Source of the DNA: Rhodosorus marinus CCMP1338
Lineage: Eukaryota > Plantae > Rhodophyta
Direction of reading: 5' to 3'
DNA: 64,000 nucleotides
Assembly (NCBI GenBank): GCA_029953675.1
Contig: JAMWBK010000011.1
Coordinates: 186,001 to 250,000, forward strand
Positions 1,801 through 46,259 of the stretch are shown piece after piece. How positions within the stretch are numbered: position 1 is the first letter of the stretch; every line of letters starts with the position of its first letter. The position numbers were made by a program, and so were the translations under genes. Under the pieces are notes generated by a model, which saw only the letters and a program-made list of their open reading frames with translations, did no database searches and was not told where the DNA came from.

Positions 1801-3655
1801 GACCCGACCGGGAAACGCCCTCCTCTGCCAGTCTCGACGGCACAGCCACGGCGTCAATATCCTCTGCAGCTTCTACACCACTGTCCAACCTCGACTGGAC
1901 TATGGCAGCGGCAGCACCACGAGATCTGGACAGAGTTGGCCCGGTGATGGTTGAACTTTATCGACATTGTACCAGAGCCAGAAGCGATACTTTGAAAACT
2001 ACGGACTACGAACAAACATCGTTGGTACGCATGCAGGACCTTCAAACAGTAGCGTTGGATGAGACGATTGTATCACCTCTTCGGCGAAGCATTTGAACCG
2101 AAGTGAGAGCGAGAACGGTTGCGCAGCGAAGGTAACCGAGAGCTGGAAGGTCGTATCACCCCTTCGGCGAAGAATGCTTCGCCGAAGGGGTGATACAATC
2201 GTCTCATCCCATTTGAACAGAAGTGAGAGCGAGAACGGTTGCGCAGCGAAGGTAACCGAGAGCTGGAAAATCGCACGTTACAAGGAAGCAATAAGGATTG
2301 AGAAACCGAATAAAATTTTTTTTTACTCCAATCGCAAATGAGAGTTTTGGGAGGACTGGACAAATGGCGCTGGAATTCTTTGCTCGATAGCTGCAGCTGT
2401 AGGCGCTTATTACCGACCGGCGCGCGGAGATCAGCGATGTGCGGGTCAGATGAACGAGAGACTATGGCAAGGTAACGCCGAGATTGCACCAGGCGCACTG
2501 CGTGTGGACTAGCTGGAAAATGCACTGGTTTCTGTTTTTTCTTTCGAACGTAACGTGAGACCCGGTAGCCGGGCTACCGTAAGTACTCCCCTAGATGGCG
2601 GTAGAAATAGTGTTACACTGAAGTAGGCAGCTGCCCAGTAAAGCTTACGGCTACCTTAGTCTGGGACACGTATTATATGTTCACAACCCCATGACTCTGC
2701 AGGCATTCAAGGCCTTTACCACTGCACAAGTTCTACAGGGAGCTGGACACTGAGACATAGCATGGTCCGGGACGCTCTGGCTACACAACTCAGACAATGG
2801 AGACTGGAGGTGACGCTGGAACCGAGTGGACCCCGCCCAGGCAGCCACCTTCGACCGGACATTTTAGCTCGCCACCTTCGGAACTGGAAGCCGTACGTGG
2901 TCGACGTAAAAGTGAGCTCGCCGCTGTTAAAGACCTACCTATACAAAGCGTCCTGGGAGACAGGGTATTCGGCCCACAAGGCAGGGAAGTCCAAATACCG
3001 GCGATCGGAGGTCATAATGATGACATTTTCGTGATCTTCTTCGTGGCGACGGGGGAGGGCTAAGCAAGCTGATGAATCTTTAGAGGAGTTGACACTGCAC
3101 TAGCACCACCCAGCAACACAAGTCAGCGACGCACGCGCAAAACTGAACCGGAGGAAAGGGAATGCACTACTTGCCCCGCAGGCGCGCCCAATTGACGAAG
3201 GGAACTATAACATCGTCCCTCTAGTAGAACATAGCCACACAACCCATTAGGGTTTTTTTAACGCATGGATAGATTGCTTATTCCCTCCTGACGGGCTCCA
3301 ATAGGGAGTCTTTTAGTAAAGCGCTCACGGTTACGTTAGTCTGGTGCTACTCTCGAGAGAGGCTTACCAAACCGCTTTCACCCGACTGTTCACTGGTCCC
3401 CTACTCGACAAAAAAACACCGAGACAAACCACTTAACCACCTCTGTTTCTACAGACAAAACGCCAAATGAACACACCCCGACGGGACTACGATGGTCAAC
3501 TGCACAACTAGCATCCCAGATCCATCTACCCCGTGACTAGGGCTGGTCTCACAGGTTCCAGCCTTTAATTGCGGAAATCTTGGGTATTTGGAAAAGTCAA
3601 GCTTGGAGTGGCAGCGCTAAGGTTTCACCGAACATCCTGAAGAATATCTGGCGCT
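1640..3655. repeat. Segmental duplication, paralogue at ~17830-20160
   Basis: Colinear similarity over ~2 kb, interrupted in the paralogue by the family A insertion at 18406-18894. Confidence 0.85.
2675..3260 (+). mobile_element. Family D RLE retrotransposon 3' fragment
   Basis: Cys/His knuckle remnant, then RHSMVRDAL, RPDILARH..VVDVKVSSPL (PD...D-type endonuclease), ending ALLAPQARPIDEGNYNIVPLVEHSHTTH*. Confidence 0.75.
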
Positions 3656-3660
3656 CCACC
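3545..3660 (+). mobile_element. Family B RLE fragment
   Basis: RFQPF..EKSSLEW..FTEHPEEYLAL matches ORF 44754-45017. Confidence 0.7.
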
Positions 3661-4291
3661 AAAAGGTGGTTTTGAGTCGCAATTATGTTCTTCGGTGGGA
3701 GGCGCTTCTTTCTGCAGCCTTTCCCCCGCTGGGGGTTGCTAGCGCCCCTTGGAGGTCGTGGTGGTTTTTCTTTGGTTGCAAACGTTGGGAACAAGTTCTC
3801 TTTTTGGGGGTTTCGTGGGGGAATCGGTTTTTCACACCTTCCAATCGTTATGGTTGGGGTTTCCCCACCCCATTCCGGCGGACGGAGCCGTTCTCTCAGC
3901 GCGTGTGGAGCTCAGCGTGGGCGGGTTTAGTACCGCGGCCACCCTCACGGACTGCGCTGACGAGTTGGCCCATGGGATCTGCTCGAAACTGACAAGTCTT
4001 CTTGTGACTGCTTCCAAGGAACACCGCCTGCCCCTGCTGATCGCCTATTTGGGGTTACGGCTCCGTCCGCCGGAATGGGTGGGGAAACCCCAACCATAAC
4101 GATTGGAAGGCGTGAAAAACCGATTCCCCCACGAAACCCCCAAAAAGAGAACTTGTTCCCAACGTTTGCAACCAAAGAAAAACCACCACGACCTCCAAGG
4201 GGCGCTAGCAACCCCCAGCGGGGGAAAGGCTGCAGAAAGAAGCGCCTCCCACCGAAGAACATAATTGCGACTCAAAACCACCTTTTGGTGG
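3656..4291. repeat. Long inverted repeat, arms 3656-3891 and 4057-4291 (family A 5' UTR), 165-nt spacer
   Basis: The arms are reverse complements apart from a 1-nt indel in a C run. Confidence 0.95.
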
Positions 4292-4341: not shown

Positions 4342-4754
4342 ACCGTGGTGCCCTAAATCATCGGGACCTTAGCTGTCACCGCTTGTGAAGCCCAACTTAC
4401 CGATGAGCTTGATCGGACGCTTTTCGCTCCACGCCTAGGAGCAGCCTTGCCCCGCAGCTACTGTGTGGCTTCCGTTCATCCCCGATGCCCCTCGCGCTCT
4501 TCTCCTGACGATGCTACTACCCCACCGCGCCTGCTTCAGGTTGCTTTCAAACCCCTTTCCTCGCGCTGGCAGGCTCCGGCACTTAGAAATGCGGTCCTAC
4601 AGACACATAGAGGTACGGACGGCGAAAACTGAGTTCCCTGCCGGGGAAGTGAATTCGTCTTCCTCCGCCGAAGAGCGATCTATCCCGCTAGGCCCCCAGT
4701 CAGCGGCTGTTCACGACTCAGCTTGCCGGCCCCGAGCTCCCGAGCAGTGCACCC
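4342..4754. repeat. Module U, left part, inverted
   Basis: Reverse complement of ~20735-21096. Confidence 0.85.
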
Positions 4755-6434
4755 GGCGGACGGAGCCGTTCTCTCAGCGCGCGTGGAGCTCAGCGTGGGC
4801 GGGTTTAGTACCGCGGCCACCTTCACGGACTGCGCTGACGAGTTGGCCCATGGGATCTGCTCGAAACTGACAAGTCTTCTTGTGACTGCTTCCAAGGAAC
4901 ACAGCCTGCCCCTGCTGATCGCCTATTTGGGGCGCTACTCCGCCTCCGCGCCTGCCCCGTACCCCCCGGTTCCCGTCCCCGCGGATCCGCACAGTACAGC
5001 GGGGCCTGCCTCCACCCGACCCGAGCTCGATCGTTTTGACGCCGGCTGGGTTCCTTCGTCGGCCTTGCAAAACCTGGATGCCTCGCAGGCTTCGGTTGTC
5101 GCGCTACACACTCATGCGGCGCGGCTCTCGCGCATACAGGCGAGCCTTTTCGCGCGTTTTCCTCCTCGCGGGGTCCTCCGCACCGCGCTAGAGGCCTTCC
5201 TCTCCACTGAGGCCACCCTGTTGGAAGCCCACCCTGCGTTTGACCTTCTGCCGCCAACTCTTGAGCACCCTTCCTCCCCTCGCCCTGTCTCCGAGCCTCG
5301 TGACACCGACATGGCAGAAGCACCATAGGCCTCTCCGAATCCGCTGGCTCTGGACACCCTCAGTCAAGACTCCGCTGCTGAAAACCCTGTGTCTACTTTC
5401 TTCAGGTCTTTTAGTTCCTTCGTGCGCCCCCCACGTAAGCGTCGTGCGGCTCCTGAGCCTCCCTCCGAGGCACCTCCTCCGGATATTCGATCTGCCTTCC
5501 CGACTGAGGGGAGGCCCGATGCCTGAGTCTTCCTCCTCCGCGAGCGTGTCGCCGGTTACCCCTGTTTACCAGTGACCGCTCAGCCTGGCATGAGCGTGTT
5601 CTCTCGTGCTTTTCGCACCTTGTCGCCTCCTACCCGGACGGTTCCCTTCCCCTTTGTCGTCAGAGCACGGCCGTACGGCTCCCTCGTCGACTTCATAAGC
5701 CCCTAGGATTGGTGTTGGATTTTCTCTGGCAGCAGGTCGCCGCGAACCCTCATTGCTTTCTTCGCTGGGAACTCTTGGTCTTTTTTCCCCGCCTCGTGCT
5801 CACCTCCTCTACCGTCCCCCTCAACCCACATCCTCGCCGGGTCCAACCTCGCCGAAAACTGCAATTGTTCCTTTCCGGCGACTTTGAGGACCTCGAACGT
5901 CTTTATTTCGCTTCTCTCTCTTCCTTTTCTCCTAGTGCTCCCTCAGCTTTTAGGTCTTCTCGACAGAATCGGGCGCGTCACGCGGTGGCAGGCGGTGATC
6001 TGCGGCGGGCAGCCGGGATCCTCCAGCAGCGGCAACCTGTGGTTCCATACTCCGATGATCTTTCTTCACCGCTCCGTTTGCTCTTTCCCTCGAAAGGCCC
6101 CCCTTGGGACTCCTCGTTTGAATCAGTGTTGGAAGAGTACCGCGCCGCGCCACATCCCAGTGCGCCGTTAGTGGTCAATCTGGAGGCGGTGCGTGAGTTG
6201 GTTTATGATGCTCCAAAGGGCGGTTCCCCAGGGCCCTCGGGGCTGCGGGTGGAATATCTCCGTTTCTTAAGTGATGAAGGTTTAAAGGCGTTGGCGTGGG
6301 TGGTCGAAGCGCTTGTGAATGGTGATCCCCTGTGTGAGTGTGCTTGGTTCTTGGTCGGGCATCCGCAGTTGTGTCTGCTTTCGAAGCCCGGTCACACGGC
6401 CTCGAGCCCTGCTATTCGCCCTATTGGCCTGGTT

Positions 6435-6469
6435 TGCGTAACCCCAGAGTAACGTAACCCCAGACTAAC
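6435..6469 (-). repeat. Junction filler: two tandem 16-bp units CGTAACCCCAGA(G/C)TAA, telomere-like
   Basis: 6437-6452 and 6453-6468 differ at one base and are absent from the equivalent element positions (7043 and 5857). Confidence 0.85.
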
Positions 6470-9323
6470 TGCAAATGTTCCTTTCCGGCGACTTTGAGGA
6501 CCTCGAACGTCTTTATTTCGCTTCTTTCTCTTCCTTTTCTCCTAGTGCTCCCTCAGCTTTTAGGTCTTCTCGACAGAATCGGGCGCGTCACGCGGTGGCA
6601 GGCGGTAATCTGCGGCGGGCAGCCGGGATCCTCCAGCAGCGGCAACCTGTGGTTCCATACTCCGATGATCTTTCTTCACCGCTCCGTTTGCTCTTTCCCT
6701 CGGAAGGCTCCCCTTGGGACTCCTCGTTTGAATCAGTGTTGGAAGAGTACCGCGCCGCGCCACATCCCAGTGCGCGGTTAGTGGTCAATCTGGAGGCGGT
6801 GCGTGAGTTGGTTCATGATGCTCCAAAGGGCCGTTCCCCAGGGCCCTCGGGGCTGCGGGTGGAATATCTCCGTTTCTTAAGTGATGAAGGTTTGAAGCGT
6901 TGGCGTGGGTGGTCGAAGCTCTTGTGAATGGTGATCCCCTGTGTGAGTGTGCGTGGTTCTTGGTCGGGCGTTCTCAGTTGTGTCTGCTTTTGAAGCCCAG
7001 CCACACGGCCTCGAGCCCTGCTATTCGCCCTATTGGCCTGGTTGAGGTGGTCCGCAAATTGGCGGCGCGATGGTTAGTGAAAATCCTGGTTCCCGAATCC
7101 CGCCGTTTCTTTGGGCACGTGCAGTTAGACGTGGGCTATCGTGGTGGCTGTGAGTTGTTGTCTGTTTTGCTCCGTTCGGAAATGGCGTACTCCCCAGATT
7201 CTGGGCTCCTCTCTGTAGATTTTACCAATGCGTTCAACCGCGTCTCTCGTCCGGCTCTCATGCACGTGGTGCGCGAAGTCTTCCCTGTAGGTTTTCCCTT
7301 TGTTAGTAGACTTTATTCTCCGCTTGGTCGTGGGGCTACCTATGACACCCTTGGCGCTTCCTCACACACGTTTGCGGCGCGCACAGGGGTACAACAGGGT
7401 GATCCCTTGTCCCCTTTCCTACATGCCTGTGGACTACAACTCGTCTTGCTTTGTCTTCGCTCCGAATTCCCGCAGGTTTGTACGGTTGCATACCACGACG
7501 ACGTGTGCCTCCTGGGGCCCCCTGATACTCCAGCACTCGCTTATGATCGTCTCCGCTCCTTGGCTTCGCGGGTTGACCTGGAGGTTAATCATCAAAAATC
7601 GTTCTACTGGGGAGGTGTAGCTGCACAAGATCAGCAGGTACCTGCGTCGTTTTAGGATATTTGGAGACCGGATGGTTTTGTCCACTTAGGCATCCCCTAC
7701 GGGTCGCCGTCCTTCGTTGAAGGCGAGTTGCTGCAGCTCCTCGGTAAGCACAGACAGCTGGTTGCAGAGCTTCGACGGCTACCTCCGGGCTTTCTCCAGT
7801 GCTCGTTGTTGCTGTTTCGTTATTGTTGCAGTCAGCGGTTAACCTATTGGCTTCGCTCATTTCCAACTCATTGGGGCCGGTGGTTGGCCACTCGTGCGGA
7901 TGCTGAAAGTTTCCGTGACCTTGGGTATTTTCTCGATGAAGAGCTGAGCGTTCTGCCGCGACCCACCTGTGATGTTGTGCGCGCCCAGGTAGGCCTCCCA
8001 TTGCGATTGGGGGGACTGGGCCTCTGCAATCGTGTTGTGGTCCAACCTGCAGCCGCAGTAGGGGCCTGGGGAACCGCACTTCCCACTTTGAGCAGCTTGG
8101 GTATCTCGAAGTTCCGCAATTTGATGGCGAGCCTCTCGCGGGGTGTCTTGCTTCCCAGCGTACCGGAAAGCGCCCAAGACTTGTTTCTGGAGCTCCAAAC
8201 CGCCCTGAATTCCTGTACTAGTCTCCCCGAAACCGTTCAACCCCGTCTTCCTGACTGGCAAGCTGTATTTGACCGCTCTCGAGGCTCCGCCCCGGGGATT
8301 CGTCCTGCGCCTGAACCTGTTCTAGGGAGATTGACCCAGTGGTTGCCGCAGAAGAAGAAGTTCCAGTTGATCCTCCTGATGATTCCCAGCGCGCTGGGAG
8401 CCGAGCTCAAGCACGCACGGATGCGCTGCAAAATATCCTTTCTTGGGACTTGCACCGTGCTGCATATGGCCGACTCCTCGCGCAGATGGTCTCATCTTCT
8501 CGCGCTCGCGCCCGCCTACGTAGTCTTGGAGGGGTTATTAGCTCTCAGTGGCTCATGACCGTACCAGCCTTTCCGCCACTCACACTGTCGGATTTCGAAG
8601 TGCGTACTTCACTGCGCTTATACCTCGGCTTACATCAGCCCCCTTGGCCGTACGAGATGGGTTTGTCGTGCCCTCTCTGCTCTCAGACTGAAGACAACGC
8701 AGATTTTGGCGCCCACCTGCTCGCTAGTTGCCCGGCGGTGAAAGGTGCTCGAACCCGCCGCCACACACGGATCTTGAACCTGTTATACCGGGAACTTCGG
8801 CCTATAGTCCGGCAAGCCGGTCTGGAAATCGAACGAGAGAAACCTTTACCCGTCGCGGACTTTCAAAATGATGAACGCCGTGTAGCCGACCTGCTGATCA
8901 CCTGTGTGACGACAGCCGCCGTACCACATACGTTGATCTTGCTGTTCCTAACCCTCAAGCTAGTCGTTATCTCCGGGCTGCGGGGGAACGCCGTGGATCT
9001 GCCGCCGCCAGCATGAGACGCCGCAAATAGATCAAATACGCGGGGGCTTTGTCTTCCCCTGGTGTTCGTGCTTCGGCACTAGCACATCGCTTGGTACCCC
9101 TGATCATTGAGTGCTTTGGGTTCATGGACTCTGTTGGTTCTCGCTGGCTTCGGGAGTTGTTCCGCGAACGCCCTGACCGTCTTCAATCGTTGTTTACCCG
9201 CTTAAGTTTCCTGCTGTGGCGCATGAATGCCGCTTTGATGTTGGAGGCGCGAGTACTTCGCCGCGCTTAGTCTTTTTTCCCCTCGGGGTTTTTTTTTTCA
9301 GCCTCCGATTAAACCATTCGTTC
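6469..9323 (+). mobile_element. 5'-truncated family A copy nested in the host copy
   Basis: Starts at the equivalent of ~5859 and ends in the tail at 9323. The flanks rejoin host sequence with GTT duplicated. Confidence 0.8.
6475..9270 (+). pseudogene. RT-zinc knuckle-RLE polyprotein, broken by frameshifts and stops
   Basis: ORF pieces 6475-6927, 6900-7655, 7728-8558, 8339-9016 and 9049-9270 give colinear RT domains, CPLC...HLLASC, RVADL and LVPLIIECFGF. Confidence 0.9.
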
Positions 9324-11605
9324 GTTGAGGTGGTCCGCAAATTGGCGGCGCGATGGTTAGTGAAAATCCTGGTTCCCGAATCCCGCCGTTTCTTTGGGCA
9401 CGTGCAGTTAGGCGTGGGCTATCGTGGTGGCTGTGAGTTGTTGTCTGTTTTGCTCCGTTCGGAAATGGCGTACTCCCCAGATTCTGGGCTCCTCTCTGTA
9501 GATTTTACCAATGCGTTCAACCGCGTCTCTCGTCCGGCTCTCATGCACGTGGTGCGCGAAGTCTTCCCTGTAGGCTTTCCCTTTGGTAGTAGACTTTATT
9601 CTCCGCTTGGTCGTGGGGCTACCTATGACACCCTTGGCCCTTCCTCACACACGTTTGCGTCCCGCACAGGGGTACAACAGGGTGATCCCTTGTCCCCTTT
9701 CCTACATGCCTGTGGACTACAACTCGTCTTGCTTTGTCTTCGCTCCGAATTCCCGCAGGTTCGTACGGTTGCATACCACGACGACGTGTGCCTCCCGGGG
9801 CCCCCGATACTCTAGCGCTCGCTTATGATCGTCTCCGCTCCTTGGCTTCGCGGGTTGACTTGGAGGTTAAGCATCACAAATCGTTCTACTGGGGAGGTGT
9901 AGCTGCACAAGAGCAGCAGGTACCTGCGTCGTTCCAGGATATTTGGAGACCGGATGGTTTTGTCCACTTAGGCATCCCCTACGGGTCGCCGTCCTTCGTT
10001 GAAGGCGAGTTGCTGCAGCTCCTCGGTAAGCACAGACAGCTGGTTGCAGAGCTTCGCCGGCTACCTCCGGGCTTTCTCCAGTGCTCGTTGTTGCTGTTTC
10101 GGTATTGTTGCAGTCAGCGGTTAACCTATTGGCTCCGCTCACTTCCAACTCATTGGGGAGGGTGGTTGGCCACTCGTGCGGATGCTGAAAGTTTCCGTGA
10201 CCTTGGGTATTTTCTCGATGAGGAGCTGAGCGCTCTGTTGCGACCCACCTGTGATGTTGTGCGCGCCCAGGTAGGCCTCCCATTGCGATTGGGGGGACTG
10301 GGCCTCTGCAACCGTGTTGTGGTCCAACCCGCAGCCGCAGTAGGGGCCTGGGGAACCGCACTTCCCACTTTGAGCAGCTTGGGTATCTCGAAGTTCCGCA
10401 ATTTGATGGCGAGCCTCTCGCGGGGTGTCTTGCTTCCCAGCGTACCGGAAAGCGCCCAAGACTTGTTTCTGGAGCTCCAAACCGCCCTGAATTCCTGTAC
10501 TAGTCTCCCCGAAACCGTTCAACCCCGTCTTCCTGACTGGCGAGCTGTATTTGACCGCTTTCGAGGCTCCGCCCCGGGGATTCGTCCTGCGCCTGAACCT
10601 GTTCTAGGGGAGATTGACCCAGTGGTTGCCGCAGAAGAAGAAGTTCCAGTTGATCCTCCTGATGATTCCCAGCGCTCTGGGAGCCGAGCTAAAGCACGCA
10701 CGGATGCGCTGGAAAATATCATTTTTGGGACTTGCACCGTGCTGCATATGGCCGACTCCTCGCGCAGATGGTCTCATCTTCTCGCGCCCGCGCCCGCGTA
10801 CGTAGTCTTGGAGGGGTTATTAGCTCTCAGTGGCTCATGACCGTACCAGCCTTTCCGCCACTCACACTGTCGGATTTCGAAGTGCGTACTTCACTGCGCT
10901 TATACCTCGGCTTACATCAGCCCCCTGGCCGTACGAGATGGGTTCGTCGTGCCCTCTCTTCTCTCAGACTGAAGACAACGCAGATTTTGGCGCCCACCTG
11001 CTCGCTAATTGCCCGGCGGTGAAAGGTGCTCGAACCCGCCGCCATACACGGATCTTGAACCTGTTATACCGGGAACTTCGGCCTATAGTCCGGCAAGCCG
11101 GTCTGGAAATCGAACGTGAGAAACCTTTACCCGTCGCGGACTTTCAAAATGATGAACGCCGTGTAGCCGGCCTGGTGATCACCTGTGACGACAGCCGCCG
11201 TACCACACATACGTTGATCTTGCTGTTCCTAACCCTCAAGCTAGTCGTTATCTCCGGGCTGCGGGGGAGCGCCGTGGATCTGCCGCCGCCAGCATGAGAC
11301 GCCGCAAAGAGATCAAATACGCGGGGGCTTTGTCTTCCCCTGGTGTTCGTGCTTCGGCACTAGCCCATCGCTTGGTACCCCTGATCATTGAGTGCTTTGG
11401 GTTCATGGACTCTGTTGGGTCACGCTGGCTTCGGGAGTTGTTCCGCGAACGCCCTGACCGTCTTCAATCGTTGTTTACCCGCTTAAGTTTCCTGCTGTGG
11501 CGCATGAATGCCGCTTTCATGTTGGAGGCGCGAGTTCTTCGCCGCACTTAGTCTTTTTTTCCCGTCGGGGTTTTTTCTTTCAGCCTCCGATTAAACCATT
11601 CGTTC

Positions 11606-12985: not shown

Positions 12986-15480
12986 TTTTGCAGCCCTTGC
13001 TCGTGTTTGTTTAGTAGCTCCAAGAAAACTAGCTTCCTTTTGCTTGCTTTGGGGTTATTGTTTTATTCCGTACAAAAACGTCTTGTTTTAGTATCCAAAG
13101 CTACAGTTCCGAGATAACAATGCCTGTGACAAAGCGAGAAACTGCTAGGTACTCTTACTCAAACGTTGCACGTGGACTGTAGGTCGCATGAAGCTCGAAA
13201 TTTCGTCGAGAATTACTGTCAGCTCCATCTAGCGCGCTACCAGAGTTTCAGCCGTTCACCTATTCTGACGCGTTGCTTTTATCACTAGGACAATTTCAGA
13301 ATCTCCAGCGACAATGCTTGTTGACAGAATTGGACCTCGCGTTCATAAACACAGTCTGTCCGCAACTACTACCACCTCAAAAATTGCCCCCCCGCCCCCC
13401 CCAATCTATACTTAACTCCTGGATCAGTGCAATGGTTGGTTGCATGGAAACCCTCCCCTCCTCCGCGGCGGAAATTCTGACCAGGAGAATTGAAAGCACA
13501 ACGCGAGTGGGAGCGGCTATTCCCGTACCGTGAAGAGAAACCAGCGCAAGTTGCCCTCGACTATCCTCACCACAGAGGTTGGTTGAAATGTACACCGAAG
13601 CGGCAAACCAGTAACCGCAAGCTTTACTGCGCAGCTGCCTACTGCAGCGCAACACTACGTCTAATCCTATCTAGGGAGAAACTAACCCCGTAGCCTTTAT
13701 TCGGCTGCTACCTACCGTAGCGCACCCCCTCTGTGGTATTGACTCAGTAGGACTAAGGGTTTGTTGGAGGGAGCGTCATCGGTGGAGGAACATTTGTCGG
13801 ACAATTACAGTCAGTACCATCTGAGAATACACACGTGTTTCGTCCGTCCGCATACTGTGACGCGCATGTTATGTGGATAGTTGGGTTGGAGAATAAGTAC
13901 ATGTTATCTTCTTCTTCTCGGCAGTACCAGAACACAGCCGTGCTGATGAGCGTGTCACCCAAAGCAGTGCAAGTCGCATTAAGGAAATCTTCGTCTGTAC
14001 AGCCGTCGCGGGGACACCCAAACGGTTGTTGACCGCTGCCTAGCCGACACACTATGGAAGAGTTCTCATCGGCAAGCTCGATTGGCTGGTTGCAGGGCCC
14101 TCCGCCGGTGACAAAACTGTTAACGAGAAAATCGCAGGACTGATCGGATACAGTTGGACCACCTACATTGTGATATGCCTCGATATATTTGCTGCCATCT
14201 GCTGCTTGGAACTGAAACGCGTTCTGTGACACACAAACCAACTTTGTGGGACCCTCCGAAGGAGTCGGCGAGGGTATCTCCGTTCTACAATCGCAGAATT
14301 CGTCCTCTCGAACATATGGTTCCTAGCCATCGGTGGTTGGTAGCAACGTTAGTCGTATCCAAAAGCGTTCACAGTTCGTCAGAGCTCAGACCCGCCCCGC
14401 CCCGCAAACCCGGAATATCCTCGCGCGGGGGGGAGCGACCACAAACAGCGCTCTGCCGAGCAGAGTTTGGGACGCGATTTACCTCGCCGATTGGGCATTC
14501 AAAACCTGCTGTTTCCTCACAAACTCCGCCTGGCCCTCGACACTGACCCGACTCGCACGGCGGGCAAGCTATCATAACGTCACAGGCAGTCGTGTTGTCG
14601 CCCTCCCTCGTCGTACACAGTTCATCCTCGTCCTCAGCGCTCAGAAAAACCCGGAATGGCTCGTCACTATCGCCTATCGCACTGACCATCGCGGAACCGA
14701 CCACCCCGACGCTCTGTCCACAACAATCAGTCTGTCCTTGCAATTCTTCGGGACACATAAGAACCCTGGCCCATCTGATCGTATCCGTAACCCCGTTCTT
14801 CGTCTTCCATCTGTCGATGTTCCTGCGAGAAGTGAATCTATCCTGACCGGTTGGGGGCTCATTAAAGTGCGCTCCAGCTCGAATCATGTTCAATTCATAT
14901 CCATCATCAGTCCTGAACTTGGCTCTGATACAACTCGGCAAGAACCCGGCCGCGGGGTCAAACTTTTTGTCGTTCAACTTGGTGTCCACACATATTTGGC
15001 CGAACCGGACTCCATGTTTGTCACGAAGGGGCCTACAGAACTCTGAAAATTCAAACGCTCCGTGCACCGGGTCAGCTGAACAGTCTTGAGATTGCGCGAC
15101 AGCGAGAACCACCACAACCACGAAGAGAAACAGTGCGTACGGTCCCATCTTCTCCTAATGCTTAACCCTCAACCAGAAAACCCACAGTCCCTCTTCCCTT
15201 CCCCTTAGCGTGTCCTCTATGCTTTTTGGTAGCGCCACGATCTATAGTTGACAGTCACGTCCTCGACCAACATAACCGAAGAAGTGGCTCCTCAACCCAA
15301 GTCTCATAGCACTGTCTTTCGCGCTGTGATATATATATATACATATCCATCTGTCTATACACACTATTGTTTGAGTTCCTCCCCAGGGTATTCATCCTAT
15401 TGCTCGGAAACTAATCGACATACTGAACTTCCATCGTAGGAAAACTCAGTCGCCTTCTCCCCACCTTCCCATGTTGGTCT
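12960..15480. repeat. Segmental duplication, paralogue at ~22330-24890
   Basis: Colinear high similarity, including the Cys-rich gene and its flanks. Confidence 0.9.
13753..15148 (-). CDS. Secreted cysteine-rich protein, 2 exons (15148-14483 and 14322-13753), 411 aa
   Basis: Hydrophobic signal peptide MGPYALFLFVVVVVLAVAQS. A 160-nt phase-0 intron (GTAAAT donor, GACTAAC branch, CTAG acceptor) joins the two track ORFs in frame. Confidence 0.8.
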
Positions 15481-15789: not shown

Positions 15790-16000
15790 GATGATCGTGC
15801 GTCTCCAACATCAAAGCAGCGTTCATACATACGCAGCAAGAAACTTAGACGGGTAAACAACGAGGACGAGGCGGTCAGGGCGTTCCCCGAACAATTCCCG
15901 ACTGCAACGAGAACCACCAACCGAATCCATAAGCCGAAAGCTCTCAATGACCGGAGGTACCGGGCGACGAGCTAGAGCCGAAGCACGAATACCTGGGAAC
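15790..16000 (-). mobile_element. Degenerate family A 3' fragment
   Basis: Reverse complement similar to 9060-9260. Confidence 0.75.
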
Positions 16001-16139
16001 ATCCAGTAGGGCGAATCGGGACGGGGGGGGGGTTGCGGAAATAGCGTTCACTTGAAAAGAAGTAAAAGCACGGCCTTTGGGAAAGGGAATTTTTTTCACC
16101 CCTGTTTTTCAGTTTTTTCAATATATCCCAGAAGTCATT

Positions 16140-16460
16140 GCATGATAATCTCAGCTTTTCAGGACGAGAAGTAATCGTGATTCATGATATGCGAAGTTTG
16201 AGATCCTTGTCCTATCAACAAGTAATCATGATTCGATGCGTGGACCGGAGATGATTGATTAGCCCGCTAACGTTGATTGAACAACAGACAAATTCTCGAA
16301 CCCTTTAATCGAACGGCAGAATCCGACATGTTTTTTTCGAAGAATTGCAATCAGGCACCGTTTACATTTATACTGATTTGCAATGGTCTGAGAACTAGCC
16401 ATTTCCATGATAAGCTCAGTTCATGGCGAGAAGTAATCGTGATTCATGATATGCGAGTGT
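16140..16460. repeat. Module with recurring 15-mer AAGTAATCRTGATTC
   Basis: Copies start at 16169, 16220 and 16431. The inverted paralogue has copies at 24981, 25033 and 25080. Confidence 0.8.
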
Positions 16461-16591
16461 AAACCCACTTCGAAATTTTATCCGACCGTGTGATAAACGG
16501 TATTGGATGGCCCATGACGACCTTATTCATATCACAAATTCATTCGTATGTATTGTATACCGTATATATAATAACGTTGTAGGGTCATTGA

Positions 16592-16878
16592 AAGAAATTT
16601 GTTTAATCAGTGATTGAAGAAAACAAAACCCTGAGGGAAAAACGAAAAAGAAAGAGCGGCGAAGATCGCGATTCTCGAACATCAAAGCAGCGCGTTCATA
16701 CGCCACCGCAAGACACTTACATGGGTAACAACGAGGACTCAGGCCGTCAGGGCGTTCGTGGAACACTTTCCCGAAGACAACGAGAACCAACCGAGTAACC
16801 CCAGAAACCCAAAGCACTCAATGACCGGAGGTGCTGCCAGGCGATGAGCTAGAGCCGAACCACGAGTACCCGGGAACA
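16592..16878 (-). mobile_element. Degenerate family A 3' fragment
   Basis: ORF 16527-16817 contains ERPDGL and AALMFENRDLRR. 3' UTR remnant is present. Confidence 0.75.
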
Positions 16879-17489
16879 TTCACGTCACCCCAGACTAACA
16901 TGGAGCGAGCAGATGAGGATGCGACGGGGAGGAGGGGAAAGTATCGTTCATTTGAGAAGAAGTAAAAACACATACTTTTGGAAAGATAATTTTTTTCACC
17001 CCTTTTTTTCAGTTTTTTCAATATATCCCTTGTATACGTTGATTTTTTTTCCGTATGGTATTTATGCTTTTTTGGATTTTTTTCTATCTGCTGGAGGGAC
17101 TCATGGATCACACGCATTTTGAACATGAGCTAAAAGCTAACAATAAAAGTTAAACTCCAAAATAACAAAATTGGAAGAAAATTCGTAGAAAACCGACGAC
17201 TACTCCGAAGAGATCCGGGGGTGTGGGAAAACGGGAGAGAACCTTTCTTCAAGGGTTGAATTACACAATTAGCTCACTTGGGGCAGAGATCTGTTTCCGC
17301 CGCATGGATCCTCGGGAAGCAGAATTCAAAGTGTGAAATCTTGTCATTCCTCTTCTGAACGATATCAGGGTCTGGTTCTTTTCTGCATCGTTGAAAAGCG
17401 TATAACGTAACCCCAAACCAGGTAAATCATGGGGAACCGGAGATTTGTGTAGTCAGCGTTCTCTTTCAAAAGACATTTAAGATCAGTGA

Positions 17490-17990
17490 CCACAAGGTCC
17501 GCCACCCGTTTCACCACTGGGGCGTCAAATTCATCAGTAAATTGCCCGTGCCACCGGCATGGGGACGTCACACTCCGCCTCGCGGTCCGTGCCCAGCTCC
17601 TGATAACGAAGATAGCGGAACAGCAAGCGGTTGAGGCGCGTATGGCGTCTTTTCCGGGCCCCTGGGACCTGTGGACAGGATGCCAACAAGTGCCCACCAA
17701 AATCACCGGAAGGCACCGAACCGCCGCACAGGTTACACCTCGAATCCCTGTCCGCAAGCCATGGAGGTTGTGGCAACCCTAGGTACAAGCGCAAGCTCGT
17801 ACGAAGCTCGAAATCTGTCACCGCCAACCGCTGATGGGCAGGAATGACCGTAAAAAACGGGGGCTCAGACTTCCCCCCAAAACCAAGGAGGCGTGCCAAG
17901 GTCGAAGGCAGAAGGGAAGGCGAACTCAGAAAGGTGCCGCCCGAGTCCCGATGTTTGTCCCAAGACAGGGTGAAAGAATGCGATCCGGCG
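17490..17990 (-). mobile_element. Family C fragment with zinc knuckle
   Basis: DFELRTSLRLYLGL..CNLCGG..HLLASCP..RRHTRLNRLL, then RVADLVVTDL. Confidence 0.85.
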
Positions 17991-18405
17991 GTTTCATCAC
18001 CGTCCAACCTCGACTGGACTATGGCAGCGGCAGCACCCGAGATCTGGACAGAGTTGGCCCGGTGATGGTTGAACTTTATCGACATTGAACAAGAACCAGA
18101 GGGGTACTTTGAAAACTACGGACTACGACCGGACATCGTTGCTACGCCTGCCAGGACCTTCGAACGGTATGCGTTGGATGTGACGATTGTATCACCCCCG
18201 CGGCGATGCATTTGAACCGAAGTGAGAGGGAGAACGGGTGTGCAGCGAAGGTAGCCGAGAACTGGAAGATCGTACACTAGGAAGCAATGAGGATTGAGAA
18301 ACTGGGTGAGAATTTTATTCCAATCGCAAATGAGAGTTTTGGGAGGACTGGACAAATGGCGCCGGAATTCTTGCGCGAATGCTGCAGCTGTAAGCACTGA
18401 TTACA

Positions 18406-18894
18406 ACGTGAGAAACCTTTACCCGTCGCGGACTTTCAAAATGATGAACGCCGTGTAGCCGACCTGGTGATCACCTGTGACGACAGCCACCGTACCACAT
18501 ACGTTGATCTTGCTGTTCCTAACCCTCAAGCTAGTCGTTATCTCCCGGCTGCGGGGGAGCGCCGTGGATCTGCCGCCGCCAGCATGAGACGCCGCAAAGA
18601 GATCAAATACGCGGGGGCTTTGTCTTCCCCTGGTGTTCGTGCTTCGGCACTAGCACATCGTTTGGTACCCCTGATCATTGAGTGCTTTGGGTTCATGGAC
18701 TCTGTTGGTTCTCGCTGGCTTCGGGAGTTGTTCCGCGAACGCCCTGACCGTCTTCAATCGTTGTTTACCCGCTTAAGTTTCCTGCTGTGGCGCATGAATG
18801 CCGCTTTGATGTTGGAGGCGCGAGTACTTCGCCGCGCTTAGTCTTTTTTTCCCCTCGGGGTTTTTTTTTCAGCCTCCGATTAAACCATTCGTTC
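18406..18894 (+). mobile_element. 5'-truncated family A insertion with GATTACA TSD
   Basis: TSD at 18399-18405 and 18895-18901. The empty paralogous site is at ~2405-2415. RLE motif RVADLVITC...YVDLAVPNP is intact. Confidence 0.92.
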
Positions 18895-19159
18895 GATTAC
18901 ACTGGAACGCGGAGATGAGCGATGTGCGGGCTCAGATGAACAGGAGACTATGGCAAGGTAGCGCCGAGATTGAAATAGGCGCTTTGCGTGTGGACCTGTT
19001 GGAAAATCTCCTGGTTTCTGTTTTTTCTTTCGAACGTAGCGTGAGACCCCGGTAGCGAGGTTCCTGTAAGTATTCCCCTATATGGCGATAGAAATAGTTT
19101 TACGCCGCAGTCGGCAGCCGTCCAGGAAAGTTTACCGCTACGTTAGTCTGGGGCATGTA

Positions 19160-19780
19160 CTATATGTTCACAACCCCATGACTCTGCAGGCATTCAACGC
19201 CTTTACCACTGCACCAGTTGTACAGGGAGCTGGGCACTGATACACAGCATTGCATGGTCCGGGACGCTCTGGTTACACAACTCAGACAATGGAGACTGGA
19301 GGGGACGCTGGAACCGAGCGGACTCTGTCCAGGCAGCCACCTTCGACCGGGCATTTTAGCTCGCCACTTTCGGACCGGGAAGCCGTACGTGATCGACCGA
19401 AAAGTCACCTCGCTGCTGCAAAAGACCTACTCATACAAAGGGTCCTCGGAGACAGAGTATGCTGACCACAAGGCAGAGACGTTTGTCCAAATACCGGCTA
19501 TCAGTGCTCGTAGTGATGACATTTTCGTGCCCTTCTGCGTGGAGAAGGGGTAATGGCTAAGCAAGCTGATAAATTTTCAAAGAGGTGACTCTGAACTTGC
19601 AGCACGCAGCGGCACAAGTCAGCGACGCACGCGCAAAAATCAACCGGTTCTTATGGGAAGCAAATGCACTACTTGCCACGCAGGCGCGCCCAATTGACGA
19701 AGGGAACTATAACATCGTCCCTCTAGTAGAACATAGCCACACAACCCATTAGGGGGTTTTTAACCCATAGATAGATTGCT
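19160..19780 (+). mobile_element. Family D 3' fragment
   Basis: Paralogue of 2675-3260. C-terminus RAKINRFLWEANALLATQARP resembles the family A C-terminus. Confidence 0.75.
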
Positions 19781-20059
19781 TATTTTCTCCTGACGGGCTC
19801 CAATAGGGAGTCTTTTAGTAAAGCGCTCACGGTTACGTTAGTCCGGTGCTACTCTCGAGAGAGGCTCATCAAACAGTTTTCACCCGACTGGTCACGGGTC
19901 CCCTACTCGACCAAAAAAAAACCAAGACAAACCACCAAACTACCACGGTTTCAACAGACGGAACGCCAAATGATCACACCGCGACGGGACTACGGTGGTC
20001 AACCGCACAACTAGCAGCCCAGATCCATCTACCCCGGGGACTAGGGCTGGTCTCACTGG

Positions 20060-20300
20060 TTCCAGCCTTTCATTGTGGAAAGCTTTGAGCATCTGGAAAA
20101 GTCAAGCTCGAAGCGGCAGCGCAAACGTTTCTCCGAACATCCTGAAAAATATCTGGTGCTCCTCCGCCGTTTGACTGTCACTCTCTGACGGTATCTAGCG
20201 ACATGCTCGCCGAGCCCTCCGCCGGGGCTTGCTTGCTCTTCTCCCTAGTCCCTAGTTTCCTTTTACGTCTTGCGTAGCGCATCAGGTTACGTTAGAAAAC
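20060..20300 (+). mobile_element. Family B 3' fragment
   Basis: Matches 44200-44420. Confidence 0.75.
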
Positions 20301-22184: not shown

Positions 22185-22345
22185 TTTGCGGTGTTTAAGT
22201 GTCTCTCTGTGGCGATATTCGAGCAGCATGCTTGCCGAGGCGCGCCATCGGCGCCTGGGTTTGCACGCTTCCCTACCTAGTTCTTAGTTCCTTTTCAGGG
22301 TTTGCGTAGCGCTTTAGGCTATGCTAATAAAGCCTGTAAAACAGG
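22185..22345 (+). mobile_element. Family B 3' fragment
   Basis: SSMLAEARHRRLGLHASLPSS* followed by the family B 3' UTR. Confidence 0.75.
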
Positions 22346-23006: not shown

Positions 23007-24399
23007 CTAGAGGTTTGTCGGAGGGAGCGTCATGGGTGGAGGAACAGTTCTCGGACAATTACAGTCAGCACCATCTGGGAATCCACAGGCGTTTCGTCCG
23101 TTCGCATACTGTGAAGCGCATGTTACGAGGATAGTTGGGTTGGAGAGTACATCTCCTTCTTCTCGGCAGTACCAGAACACAGCCGCGCTAATGAGCGTGT
23201 TACCCGAAGTACTGCAAGTCGCACTAAGGAAATTTTGGTCTGTACAGGGGGGACACCCCGCCGGTTGTTGACCGCTGCCTGTCGCACACACTATGGAAGA
23301 GTTCTCATCGGCAAGCTCGATTGGTTGATTGCAGGGCCCTCCGCCAGTGACAAAACTGTTAGTGAGAAAAGCGCAGGCCTGGCTTGCTACGCTTGGACCA
23401 CCGAAGTTCAGACGTGCCTCGATCCGTTTGCTGCCATCTGCTGCTTGGTACTGAAACGCGTTCTGTGACACACATTCCAACTTTGTGGGACCCTCCGAAG
23501 GAGTCGGCGAGGGTATCTCCGTTCTACAATCGCAGAATTCGTCCTCTCGAACATATGGTTCCTAGACATCGGTGGTTGGTAGCAACGTTAGTCGTATCCA
23601 AAAGCGTTCACAGTTCGTCAGAGCTCAGACCCGCCCCGCCCCGCAAACCCGGAATATCCTCGCGCGGGGGGGAGCGACCACAAACAGCGCTCGGCAGAGC
23701 GCTGTTTGTGGCAGAGTTTGGGACGCGACTTACCTCGCCGATCGGGCATTCAAAACCTGCAGTTTCCTCACAAACTCCACCTGGCCCTCGACACTGACCC
23801 GACTCGCACGGCGGGCAAGCTATCATAACGTCACAGGCAGTCGTGTTGTCGCCCTCTCTCGTCGTACACAGATCATCCTCGTCCTCAGCGCTCAGAAAAA
23901 CCCGGAATGGCTCGTCACTATCGCCTATCGCACTGACCATCGCGGAACCGACCACCCCGACGCTCTGTCCACAACAATCAGTCTGTCCTTGCAATTCTTC
24001 AGGACAGACAAGAACCCTGGCCCATCTGATCGTATCCGTAACCCCGTTCTTCGTCTTCCATCTGTCGATGTTCCTGCGAGAAGTGAATCTATCCTGACCG
24101 GTTGGGGGCTCATTAAAGTGCGCTCCAGCTCGAATCATGTTCAATTCATATCCATCATCAGCCCTGAACTTGGCTCTGATACAGCTCGGCAAGAACCCGG
24201 CCGCGGGGTCAAACTTTTTGTCGTTCAACTTGGTGTCCACACATATTTGGCCGAACCGGACTCCATGTTTGTTGCGAAGGGGCCTACAGAACTCTGAAAA
24301 TTCAAACGCTCCGTGCACCGGGTCCGCTGAACAGTCTTGAGATTGCGCGATAGCGAGAACCGTCACAACCACGAAGAGAAACAGTGCGTACGGTCCCAT
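23007..24399 (-). CDS. Secreted cysteine-rich protein paralogue, 2 exons (24399-23734 and 23561-23007), 406 aa
   Basis: Same structure as 13753-15148. The 172-nt intron has a GTAAGT donor, GACTAAC branch and CTAG acceptor. Confidence 0.8.
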
Positions 24400-28999: not shown

Positions 29000-29225
29000 A
29001 GACTAGGCCTTACTAGACTGGGCTTTACTAGCATAGCCTGAAACGCTACGCAAGGCGTGAAAAGGAACTAAGAACTAGGGAGGGAAGCGTGCAAACCCCT
29101 GCGCCGATGGCGCGCCTCGGCAAGCATGCTGCTAGAATATCGCCACAGGGCGGCACTCAAACGCCGTAAAAGCGCAAAGTACTCAGTAGAATGCTCAGCG
29201 AAACATTTCCGCAACCACTCTAAAG
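29000..29225 (-). mobile_element. Family B 3' fragment with repeated tail
   Basis: Reverse complement of the family B 3' end. Tail reads CTAGTAAAGCCCAGT-CTAGTAAGGCCTAGT. Confidence 0.75.
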
Positions 29226-29779: not shown

Positions 29780-30874
29780 CTACAGAGCTGCCTCATTTCT
29801 TTTCAGCCAGTCGTCCACAATTCCTACTAGCACATCTGGCTTTTCTTCGTGTGGATTGTGCCCGCAGTCCGAAATTGTACGAAGCTCAGCGTGCGGAATA
29901 CACTTCTGCAAGTGTTCTACTTCAGGACGCTGGATAACTCTATCATGCGAAGCACTAAGAATCAGTACAGGAATGTCAAGCCTCCGCGCATCATCGGACG
30001 AGTCGTAGTCTCGCATTGCTCGCACTATCTCCACCGCTCCACGCACCCAGCCTGAGTGCCGCATAGGTCTCGTGTACCCATAGAAAATATCCTCGCAATC
30101 TAGCCTAGAGCTGTCAAAGTAGTATCTCTCAAGCAAGTTCTCAAAATACGCACGACAGGTTGCCCTCCTCCCCATTGCCACGAAGAACAGAACGGAAGCG
30201 ATGATGGGAATTTTGAAAAGGAACAGGAAGAAATTTGGCAGTGTGATTCTGGAACGAGTAAGTGTCGTCGCCGGGGCAATGAGTACGAGTGCCCTGACTC
30301 TTCCAGGATTGTTTACAGCCACCTGAATAGCCAGGGACGCGCCCATTGAATGTCCTACGGCAACCACTTTGTCCATGTGAAACTCCTCCATGACCCCTTT
30401 TGCATGTCTCCCGCAGAAGTCCAGGGAGTACGGGTTTACCCTCCCACCAGCAAGAGCCCAGGAAAGCGCACGAGGTCGTGAGCTTAAACCGAACGGAGGT
30501 CTGTCAAATGCCACACACTGACCGCCGCCAATTCTGGACAGCGGTTCTAAAATCCGCTTGAATGAATAGGTAGAGCTCAATGCACCATGCAATAAGAGCA
30601 GGTCCACTTCTCCCGACTTCCTCGCTGGTTTCCCCGCGACCGCACAGTGCGTCCTGATCCTTCCGCCTCCAGCATCTCCAGTATTTACATGCACAAACTT
30701 GGACCTCTCCTCGTCTACAACCAGCTGCGCCGGTTGAGTAACGATCGACCGAGCCAGGCGAATGAGAGCACGTCCAACTGACACTTTTCTCACTCGAACC
30801 CCATTCACTCTGGTAGCACCTACGCAGGTAGGATTCAGAAATCCAATTCGTGAATCTATTTGTCTTGTCTCCAT
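29780..30874 (-). CDS. Alpha/beta hydrolase (copy 1); the 5' end may extend through upstream exons
   Basis: LLLLHG oxyanion motif, DRPPFGLS, GHSMG nucleophile elbow, HD acid and CGHNPHEE catalytic His. Confidence 0.88.
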   Translation of the reverse strand: METRQIDSRIGFLNPTCVGATRVNGVRVRKVSVGRALIRLARSIVTQPAQLVVDEERSKFVHVNTGDAGGGRIRTHCAVAGKPARKSGEVDLLLLHGALSSTYSFKRILEPLSRIGGGQCVAFDRPPFGLSSRPRALSWALAGGRVNPYSLDFCGRHAKGVMEEFHMDKVVAVGHSMGASLAIQVAVNNPGRVRALVLIAPATTLTRSRITLPNFFLFLFKIPIIASVLFFVAMGRRATCRAYFENLLERYYFDSSRLDCEDIFYGYTRPMRHSGWVRGAVEIVRAMRDYDSSDDARRLDIPVLILSASHDRVIQRPEVEHLQKCIPHAELRTISDCGHNPHEEKPDVLVGIVDDWLKRNEAAL

Positions 30875-32883: not shown

Positions 32884-34419
32884 TCATTCTACTTTTTCGA
32901 TCCCAGGGGGATAGTAGAGGCCACTTGATACCACCGATTCTGGTGCGTAGACACGGGTGACAGCGTAGAATAATCCGTCTGGAGCTGGAAGCCAGTTCCA
33001 AGGTTCAGCGTTGTACGGTGGCTTCACGGGTTGCTTATAGCTCATTACAACCGGATAGTTTCCATCCTCATCTGGAGTCGCATTTTGGATATTGTAATGA
33101 TAGATTTCCTCCGAGTTTTCGACCAGCATGAAGTTGCTGGAGTTGTACATTGTGAGCGACCAATATCCAGTGGATTTGACGGGCATATTCCCGGGAATGG
33201 TCACTGTGTACATTCTGTTGTGCTTCGCGTTGAGTGGCTTCCCATCAGTAGATTTATCTCCCTTAAAGTAAACCGCGTCCCGGGCGCAGTTCGCAGCGAT
33301 GTATGCAATCGCCACTATGTCCCGAATCAGGTACCCCCGGTTGTTGTTCGTGAACGTAGTACAGGGGTTTATGAAGATGCTCGACGTATAGTTCTGCGGG
33401 TTAATCATGATGCTGAGGCGCTGTTCGTATTTGAAATATACACGAAGCCAGTTGTTCCACATCTCAGCTACTTGGCCCAGAATATTCCTCTGCTTCTTCG
33501 TGAGCCTTTTCGGGTTGAAGACGCCGTCTACATCGAACCCAACCTTCTGTGAGGCTTCGATTACATCCTCATTGATCACTCCGCCGATTTTGTACCCGTC
33601 AAAGCTGTAAGGCCTGTCACTGCGCCACGGTTTGTTCTCTTGCCATACATCTGAGATAGTCACCCAGGGATACAAGCCCGATCCAACGTAATCATGCGGG
33701 TTCGACCCCGCTGGTTCCACCCAGGGACTACCCCGATGATGGAAGGTTGGTATCGGCGTAGGTTCAGGCGTTTTCCCGTACGTCTGAAGAGTGAAACCTT
33801 CTGCACACTCCTGGGCGGCTTCAGTGTCGTCCGGTCCGTTCCATTTGACCCTCAGCACAATCCACATGATCGGAGTCGGAGAACGAATGACGCTGATTCC
33901 AGGAGCAACAGACGGGACCTCGTCGCCGTGGTGGAACACAACTGTCTGCTTGCCAGTTTCTCCGTTAGTGTATCCAGGAGCGGCGAAGACTCCCTGATAA
34001 TAGTGGATGCATTCAGCAATGAAGAAACGCCCCTCGGTGTCCGGGATGTTGAGCTGTACCGGTCCGTCTGCCAGATTGAGCCATGCTGTGTTGTAAACAA
34101 CATCAACGTTCGGCGAAACAATGGAGGCATCGCTGGGATCCGCTGGTCCGCTGTGGGTAAACTGGTTCATAGGGTTATAGACTCCAGTGGTTTGGTTCGA
34201 CCGTACCCACTGTGACTGGATTGCAGTCGTTCCCCACCAAAGCACCTTCATAGCATTTGCCATGAACTCCTTATCACGGATGGAGACGTCGCCTGCCTGA
34301 GCCATGCTCGCGGCTACAGCATCCTCCAGTTCCAAACCGAGAAGCGGAAGTCCACTTACAACTGCAGCACACAGTACCGTGCAGCAAATAGCTGCCTTAT
34401 TCATACTAGTACTCTTCAT
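32884..34419 (-). CDS. DUF1254/DUF1214 domain protein with signal peptide, intronless, 511 aa
   Basis: SPNVDVVYNTAWLNLADGPVQLNIPD (DUF1254-like). DGKPLNA..YWSLTMYN and NWLPAPDG..RVYAP (DUF1214-like). Confidence 0.85.
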   Translation of the reverse strand: MKSTSMNKAAICCTVLCAAVVSGLPLLGLELEDAVAASMAQAGDVSIRDKEFMANAMKVLWWGTTAIQSQWVRSNQTTGVYNPMNQFTHSGPADPSDASIVSPNVDVVYNTAWLNLADGPVQLNIPDTEGRFFIAECIHYYQGVFAAPGYTNGETGKQTVVFHHGDEVPSVAPGISVIRSPTPIMWIVLRVKWNGPDDTEAAQECAEGFTLQTYGKTPEPTPIPTFHHRGSPWVEPAGSNPHDYVGSGLYPWVTISDVWQENKPWRSDRPYSFDGYKIGGVINEDVIEASQKVGFDVDGVFNPKRLTKKQRNILGQVAEMWNNWLRVYFKYEQRLSIMINPQNYTSSIFINPCTTFTNNNRGYLIRDIVAIAYIAANCARDAVYFKGDKSTDGKPLNAKHNRMYTVTIPGNMPVKSTGYWSLTMYNSSNFMLVENSEEIYHYNIQNATPDEDGNYPVVMSYKQPVKPPYNAEPWNWLPAPDGLFYAVTRVYAPESVVSSGLYYPPGIEKVE

Positions 34420-46135: not shown

Positions 46136-46259
46136 ACTTGCAAAATGTTCCATAATTAGCGATGAGTCTTGCTCAGGCAGATACCTATTTTCAAAAATTT
46201 TCTCGGATATGGAATGCATCCGTAGGCCGGGATGCCGCTCTCCAGTCTTACAAACATAG

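Follow-up and report, generated by a model that had tools for sequence, protein, structure and literature searches.

Long, non-canonical telomerase repeats are known from yeasts, with GGGTTAGTCA in Yarrowia lipolytica and units of 16-25 nt in Candida and Kluyveromyces; to our knowledge, a 16-nt telomerase repeat is unknown outside the budding yeasts. In primates and rodents, telomerase is said to insert short interstitial telomeric repeats at sites of double-strand-break repair, reportedly the finding of Nergadze et al. in 2004 and 2007. LINE-1 inserts endonuclease-independently at dysfunctional telomeres, and HeT-A/TART of Drosophila, TRAS/SART of Bombyx and Athena of rotifers are telomere-associated, with short telomeric tracts between the elements. 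Template switching at LINE 5' junctions is represented by U6/L1 chimeras, template jumping of R2 and twin priming of L1.

Rhodosorus marinus CCMP1338 is a red alga of the Stylonematophyceae (assembly GCA_029953675.1; PMC10250338). The assembly was made from Nanopore reads with NextDenovo, polished with Pilon, and comprises 13 large and four small contigs (PMC10250338). At least one telomere has been claimed for 12 contigs, with 18 ends scored as telomeric; the telomere motif is nowhere given in the genome paper, and the 16-mer described here does not occur in its supplementary text (PMC10250338). Mesophilic red algae of three classes were TRAP-negative with all standard telomere motifs and primers (PMC3622300), and red algal telomere data have been termed fragmentary (PMC7046594). 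A literature search found no Rhodosorus telomere sequence and returned, for all rotations of the 16-mer, chance matches to primers only.

In this study, a stretch of 64,000 nt (the window) was analysed. It is internal on contig JAMWBK010000011.1 (1.44 Mb), about 190-250 kb from a contig end. At 6435-6469, TG and 2.06 head-to-tail units of CGTAACCCCAGA(G/C)TAA were found between two copies of one LINE family. Like the long repeats of yeasts, the unit combines a GGGTTA-type core with a spacer and a telomeric-type strand bias; unlike them, it comes from a red alga and is known here from internal sequence alone. The junction resembles those of telomere-associated LINEs in that the element directly adjoins telomere-like repeats, with an atypically short target duplication and with the C strand upstream of the sense element, the polarity for a continuous G-strand 3' end and cDNA. 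It differs in lying about 0.2 Mb from a contig end, inside another LINE and with two units only; in most copies of the family, moreover, the duplications are of the ordinary 7-10 bp and the sites are unrelated. We tentatively favour, at somewhat less than even confidence, a reading in which the filler is templated and was laid down as the 5' end of the nested LINE was joined to its target; telomerase would have made it, and the other short pieces of the unit would be telomerase additions.

The junction and its LINE family

The first-pass annotation had described two head-to-tail 16-bp units between the target flank and a 5'-truncated nested element. The sequence, which reads tg CGTAACCCCAGAGTAA CGTAACCCCAGACTAA C, and Tandem Repeats Finder (6437-6469; period 16, 2.1 copies, 94% matches, score 59) both agree with that description. 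The G strand, TTAGTCTGGGGTTACG, consists of 6 T, 6 G, 2 A and 2 C; its GGGGTTA core, G run and strand asymmetry, with only two C on a T/G-rich strand, justify the term telomere-like. By itself, a tandem of two copies counts for little, as the window contains about seven further two-copy tandems of period 13-20. One of the several is a perfect 17-nt x 2.1 tandem of AATTCCCGGCGAAGACA at 54795-54830, within an old LINE 3' fragment. The coordinates of the features are listed in Table 1.

Table 1. Features of the junction, pieces and variants of the 16-nt unit, and neighbouring genes. Positions refer to the window unless locus L002 or L003 (contig 13) is named.
Feature	Position	Strand	Remarks
Host LINE copy H, left part	4468..6434	+	stops within RT motif ...RPIGL(V)
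TG dinucleotide	6435..6436	.	neither element nor unit
Filler unit 1	6437..6452	-	+ strand CGTAACCCCAGAGTAA; G-rich strand TTACTCTGGGGTTACG, one base off consensus
Filler unit 2 and one base	6453..6469	-	+ strand CGTAACCCCAGACTAA+C; G strand G+TTAGTCTGGGGTTACG, the consensus
Nested LINE copy B	6470..9323	+	5'-truncated, frameshifted; 97% identical to reference
Host copy H, right part	9324..11605	+	starts GTTGAGGTGG
Class I: filler	6437..6469		33 nt
Class I: 17-nt single unit	16883..16899	-	+ strand CGTcACCCCAGACTAAC; clean insertion relative to paralogous unit at ~16000
Class I: 13-nt piece	17403..17415	-	+ strand TAACGTAACCCCA; within a 13-14-nt insertion
Class I: piece at inverted duplication	4048..4059	+	TTTGGGGTTACG: element's own TTTGGGG, then TTACG, at the centre
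Class I: L002 piece	L002 12887-12904		native CTTAGT(C) of CRE 3' UTR, then TGGGGTTACG, then native T-run
Class I: L003 piece	L003 142-156		body-less, with TGGGGTTACG
Z2 conserved end	3329..3344	+	GGTTACGTTAGTCTGG, one full permuted unit; duplicate copy 19831-19846
Z1 conserved end	19137..19153	+	gCTACGTTAGTCTGGGG; duplicate copy 2656-2665 reads TTAGTCTGGG
T-type copies, window	44208-44425, 44637-44851, 46248-46370, 22194-22342, 29023-29161, 20091-20299
T-type copies, L002	3418-3618, 14234-14455, 15046-15260
T-type copies, L003	6412-6559, 7602-7830, 14642-14897, 16672-16872
Alpha/beta-hydrolase genes (three)	29780-30874, 38038-39171, 47680-48810
DUF1254/DUF1214 genes (two)	32884-34419, 41436-42131
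Secreted Cys-rich 260-aa ORFs (two)	14369-15148, 23608-24399

Within the left part of the host copy, 4468-4754 recurs at 21022-20735, and there is a 95-98% match between 5857-6434 and 6467-7043. Copy B spans 6467/6470-9323 and its 5' end corresponds to H 5857/5860, so that B is a 5'-truncated copy nested in H. It ends in ...GATTAAACCA, followed by the tail TTCGTTC(GTT). Three uninterrupted copies of the family define the empty site as cctattggcctggtt/gaggtggtcc (slash, insertion point), with no motif there. Since H-left ends in ...ggcctggtt and H-right begins with gttgaggtgg, the target duplication is at most GTT (0-3 bp). A duplication of this size together with a 34-nt filler, against the 7-10 bp duplications of the family, indicates that copy B was joined atypically. 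At the truncation point the family consensus reads ...gaaaAC/TGCAA and copy B ...ctaAC/TGCAA; AAC at 6467-6469 is common to filler and element and constitutes a microhomology. Comparison with the 4.3-kb element reference gave no match to the filler, in line with the earlier statement that it is not element sequence. The other points made from the junction also hold: the expected cDNA 3' end (...GCAGTT) overlaps the unit by GTT/AAC, and with this overlap the polarity fits extension of a cDNA 3' end.

An identical final structure would result from two events, if the 16-mer block had already been present in the host copy and LINE B had later inserted exactly beside it, the LINE endonuclease or priming step perhaps preferring the 16-mer sequence. 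Stand-alone insertions of the motif do exist elsewhere, but two rare events would be needed at one nucleotide, the target sites of about ten other LINE copies have no resemblance to the 16-mer, and the three uninterrupted copies lack the motif at this site. We consider such a history unlikely.

The reverse transcriptase (RT) of the element is of the non-LTR type (Pfam RVT_1, E=1.2e-10), with LINE-1 ORF2p and R2 proteins as its best PDB matches (E=4e-10 to 6e-9). The C-terminal CCHC region, CPLCSQTEDNADFGAHLLASC, matches region 944-983 of the R2 protein (E=7e-4), and a PD-(D/E)XK-like stretch (D...D/E-K motifs) C-terminal to the RT was recognized by eye only, Pfam giving no match. The element shares with the CRE/R2 group (SLACS, CZAR, CRE1/2, NeSL, R2) a single RT, here followed by a probable CCHC motif and a putative restriction-like-endonuclease region. 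It also shares with the group the lack of poly(A): its 3' end, ...GATTAAACCA, is followed only by a short-repeat tail, (TTCG/ATTC)n. Unlike members of the group it is not spliced-leader- or rRNA-specific, its copies being dispersed, mutually nested and in variable targets. The roughly 20 copies in the window are mostly 5'-truncated and have differing 7-10 bp target duplications at unrelated sites; among them, no insertion into one specific repeated gene of the spliced-leader or rDNA type was found. Two R. marinus genes were retrieved in protein searches with the C-terminal domain and the RT; a LINE cluster in the interior of contig 13 contains both. LINE/CRE elements make up 9% of the R. marinus genome, with 4036 copies (RepeatMasker table, PMC10250338).

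At window positions 1-21000, L002 2600-13600 and L003 1000-18900, CRE-type LINEs both young (96-98% identical) and old are densely nested. Situated in one place on each of two contigs, the nests may be centromere-like repeat islands. At 51161-51544, a 192-bp unit of LINE 3' UTR and tail is present twice at 94% identity, representing two 3'-end fragments in tandem. Two units about 900 bp apart, u1 and u2 (15790-17030), each consist of an antisense LINE 3' fragment and the 3' UTR of a second LINE family; the antisense fragments of both are truncated at the identical base. The endonuclease ORF of this second family (17534-18085, - strand) had no detectable homolog in the protein database. Between 12000 and 50000, segmental duplications of a gene set (Table 1) are found amid LINE fragments, and a cluster look-up with the genes of the window returned no copies elsewhere.

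Recurrence of the unit

The survey for recurrence covered 113 kb from two contigs, that is, the window and the loci L002 and L003. Pieces of the circular unit were found at a minimum of eight other sites on the two contigs, including both loci. With up to three mismatches the 16-mer occurs six times (0.54 expected), and one of the matches is a 17-nt copy with a single mismatch. Outside the filler, 12-mers of the circular unit gave 15 matches in the window against 0.2 expected. These formed seven clusters, compared with a mean of 0.16 for 400 permuted 16-mers; 13-mers formed five clusters, compared with 0.04 (maximum 2) for the permuted motifs. The recurrence is far beyond chance. No array of more than two units, no telomerase RNA template and, besides the filler, no C-strand stretch longer than 17 nt was found in the 113 kb. 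The window and both loci contain no Rfam family or tRNA. The exact 23-mer had no match in a metagenome scan, and the looser pattern TGGGGTTACG-N4-10-TGGGGTTACG had more than 120 metagenome matches, all unrelated (for example, Gly-Tyr coding repeats and degenerate TTAGGG satellites).

Two explanations lose most of their plausibility with this recurrence. The first is that random nucleotides at the junction were duplicated once by replication slippage and look telomere-like by chance; in its favour, tandems of two copies and period 13-20 are common in this DNA. The 16-mer, including its 17-nt one-mismatch copy, recurs at levels that permuted motifs do not reach, and we regard slippage as very improbable and close to refuted. 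The second is an assembly, polishing or adapter error: the region is a nest of near-identical repeats in an assembly made from Nanopore reads with NextDenovo and Pilon. The motif is nonetheless shared by duplicate copies of repeats that differ from each other by 7-14%, and is present on a second contig as well, which is unexpected for adapters or polishing errors, and an artefact is hardly credible. The Nanopore ligation adapter presumably has only the 7-mer GTTACGT in common with the unit.

Recurrences are of two kinds. Class I was defined as body-less pieces containing TGGGGTTACG, and six such pieces, the filler included, were found (Table 1). Comparison with paralogs identified three as clean insertions, of 17 nt (16883-16899), 13-14 nt (17403) and about 10 nt (L002 12887-12904). 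The first is flanked by AACAT...AACAT, a 5-bp duplication; the second is missing from two paralogs (~26770 and ~27250). Read on the G strand, all six pieces end in ...T(T/G)ACG. In those whose native sequence is known from a paralog, the start is in register with 3-6 native bases (GTT, GTT, TGG, TGGGG, TTAGTC). Judged from sequence, these starts and ends look like the outcome expected if a 3' end annealed to an internal RNA template and was elongated as far as a fixed boundary. The interstitial copies have the look of de novo additions, being pure repeat, in register and absent from the empty site; the same pattern could also be obtained from another RNA template with a fixed end.

In being short, pure, missing from the homologous empty site and without an element body, and in beginning in register with a few native bases, the R. 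marinus blocks are like interstitial telomeric insertions. They are unlike them in their 16-nt unit, in their length of at most two units and in the position of one block at a LINE 5' junction, the likeness being one of pattern alone.

The piece at 4048 lies at a 236-bp inverted duplication (3656-3891 / 4057-4291), the arms of which are 99-100% complementary and separated by 165 bp from the LINE 5' region. At its right junction, ...TTTGGGG is followed by TTACG and then by the inverted copy. The duplication may be a genuine fold-back rearrangement or may have arisen in the Nanopore assembly. Three other origins for class I pieces were considered and set aside. A 2.26-kb transposon bounded by 12-nt inverted CCCCAGACTAAC (16887 and 19153) was discarded because the paralogous unit is without the 17 nt only, not without the 2.26 kb. 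A spliced-leader relic of the dinoflagellate-retrogene type does not agree with a motif present in either orientation and at a distance from gene starts. An origin as NUMTs from mitochondrial minicircles is at variance with the length of the pieces, 5-17 nt being too little for a typical NUMT.

Class II comprises element-borne versions. The first-pass annotation had held that its telomere interpretation would fall if the filler mapped as ordinary unique or element sequence elsewhere in the genome, and this applies in part: interspersed repeats have most of the unit (GGTTACGTTAGTCTGGGG) as their conserved end. Repeats Z1 and Z2 (1900-3345 and 18019-19847) have copies that are 86-93% alike. The Z1 terminus is ...TACGTTAGTCTGGGG and that of Z2 is ...cacGGTTACGTTAGTCTGG, both present in diverged duplicate copies; other Z1-type copies stop at ...CTTACGGTTAC and have unrelated flanks.

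Repeats of 10-15 nt related to the unit flank another element family, here called T-type, of which at least 14 copies were found, with a core of about 220 bp and a length of up to about 500 bp. One constant end, ...GCGTAGCGCATCAGGCTATG, is followed by variable tandem repeats, (TAAAGCCCAG)n, (CAGTAAAACC)n or (GTAAAGCCCAGTCTA)n, about 75% similar to the unit. The element may be SINE-like or a MITE. T-type copies in L003 carry CCCAGACAA(A/G)CGTAAC and GTTTGTCTGGG(G) about 500 bp apart, beside a palindrome at 6083-6119 (CTAG/CCCAGACAAACGTA/GTTACGTTTGTCTGGG/CTAG; 30 bp, perfect arms). A variant of the unit thus forms inverted ends and a 30-bp CTAG-flanked palindrome in T-type elements. The palindrome looks like two inverted element termini joined, as an excision footprint or an internally deleted element. 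A clean TIR transposon was considered for the T-type and not established, homology running past the putative right end. At L003 15033-15052, TAACGgAACCCCAGACTAgC follows a CRE-subfamily 3' UTR in sense orientation (18/20 match). Class II ends may be retroelement tails, transposon termini, or old insertions later amplified. Element ends with up to one unit exist, and none with two tandem units was found in the 113 kb.

Candidate templates for the filler

Template-switch capture of mobile-element sequence stays a serious alternative because most of the unit is an interspersed-repeat end. The 16-mer would then belong to another family (Z1/Z2-type, T-type or a CRE subfamily) as its terminal repeat or tail repeat. 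Either the R2-like RT would have jumped from the truncated LINE RNA to the RNA of that family via the AAC/GTT microhomology, or the 3'-OH of the upstream target would have served as primer on that RNA, in a manner similar to twin priming, with copying of 33 nt and joining of the ends. Abortive copies of a terminus alone, or excision footprints, would account for the other short pieces. Template jumping is an established property of R2 enzymes, and the LINE protein is R2-like. As in template-switch LINE chimeras, a 5'-truncated copy made by an R2-like enzyme has foreign sequence next to the target and a 3-nt microhomology at the truncation point. The captured sequence differs from that of such chimeras in that it consists purely of tandem repeats, ends in a fixed phase and is not a known RNA 3' end. 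Besides the ends of Z1 and Z2, the variable repeats that flank T-type elements, the L003 termini with their CTAG palindrome and the sense-oriented copy after the CRE-subfamily 3' UTR all speak for an element source, as does the AACAT duplication around the insertion at 16883, for which staggered cutting by an endonuclease is a better explanation than simple repair of a break.

Several observations are difficult to bring into agreement with this origin. An element body with tandem 16-mers was not found in the 113 kb, whereas pure pieces without a body number six. The junction TGGGGTTAC, present in 6/6 body-less pieces, is not spanned by the element termini, and element-borne versions are diverged where the insertions match one consensus. 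The T-type tail repeats were never found as body-less insertions in the window and loci, which speaks against tail-only retroposition being general in the R. marinus genome. We regard an element source for the filler and the other pieces, by either route, as only slightly less probable than synthesis by telomerase.

The reading we tentatively favour, synthesis by telomerase, can be set out in steps. The minus-strand cDNA would leave its RNA at element position ~1458, ending in ...GCAGTT-3', and its GTT would pair with an RNA template bearing the C-rich strand (...CGUAACCCCAGACUAAC...). Two rounds of extension would add AGTCTGGGGTTACG and then TTACTCTGGGGTTACG, both stopping at ...TTACG. The extended end would then be ligated to the upstream target via two extra bases and without the usual staggered second cut. 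Telomerase would be the best-fitting enzyme, with its internal template of fixed end, pure repeat products and register-matched priming. TTAGTCTGGGGTTACG would be the product of the R. marinus telomerase, and the other short pieces would be additions at breaks, in the manner of short interstitial telomere-like insertions. We infer that the template is the telomerase RNA and that chromosome ends carry the TTAGTCTGGGGTTACG repeat.

The telomerase interpretation, already advanced in the first-pass annotation, is supported in part. Junction, polarity and recurrence are consistent with it, and so are the end phase shared by class I, the T-type tails that are never body-less and the absence of any canonical telomere motif of 12 nt or more from 118 kb. 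Against it stand the conserved ends of Z1 and Z2, which carry most of the unit, the internal position of the window and the limit of two units per array. In its favour, the duplicate Z1 end, TTAGTCTGGG, differs by one base from the Yarrowia sequence TTAGTCAGGG.

Possible significance for red algal telomeres

For non-cyanidialean red algae, there is a recognised gap in what is known of telomere sequences. If the 16-mer is a mobile-element terminus, the site described here is an ordinary chimeric LINE junction, and it would still represent R2-like template switching in an alga. The sequence features allow the tentative suggestion, which we put at rather below an even chance, that R. marinus and perhaps other mesophilic red algae use the 16-nt telomerase repeat TTAGTCTGGGGTTACG, and that the enzyme also acts on internal 3' ends. 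Within the same suggestion, LINE cDNAs and broken DNA would keep scars of one or two units, and the end that these scars have in common would correspond to the boundary of the template.

If the 16-mer caps the chromosomes of R. marinus, a long telomerase repeat would be known for the first time from Archaeplastida, and the failed TRAP assays of three red algal classes (PMC3622300) would be explained. The 16-mer would then serve as a probe, as a TRAP primer (ending ...TCTGGGGTTACG) and as a search key for the telomerase RNA (CGTAACCCCAGACTAACGTAAC, template ending 5'-CGUAAC...). In the internal scars, the action of telomerase on retrotransposon cDNA and on breaks would be naturally recorded, with a bearing on the long-standing connection of telomerase to non-LTR reverse transcriptases.
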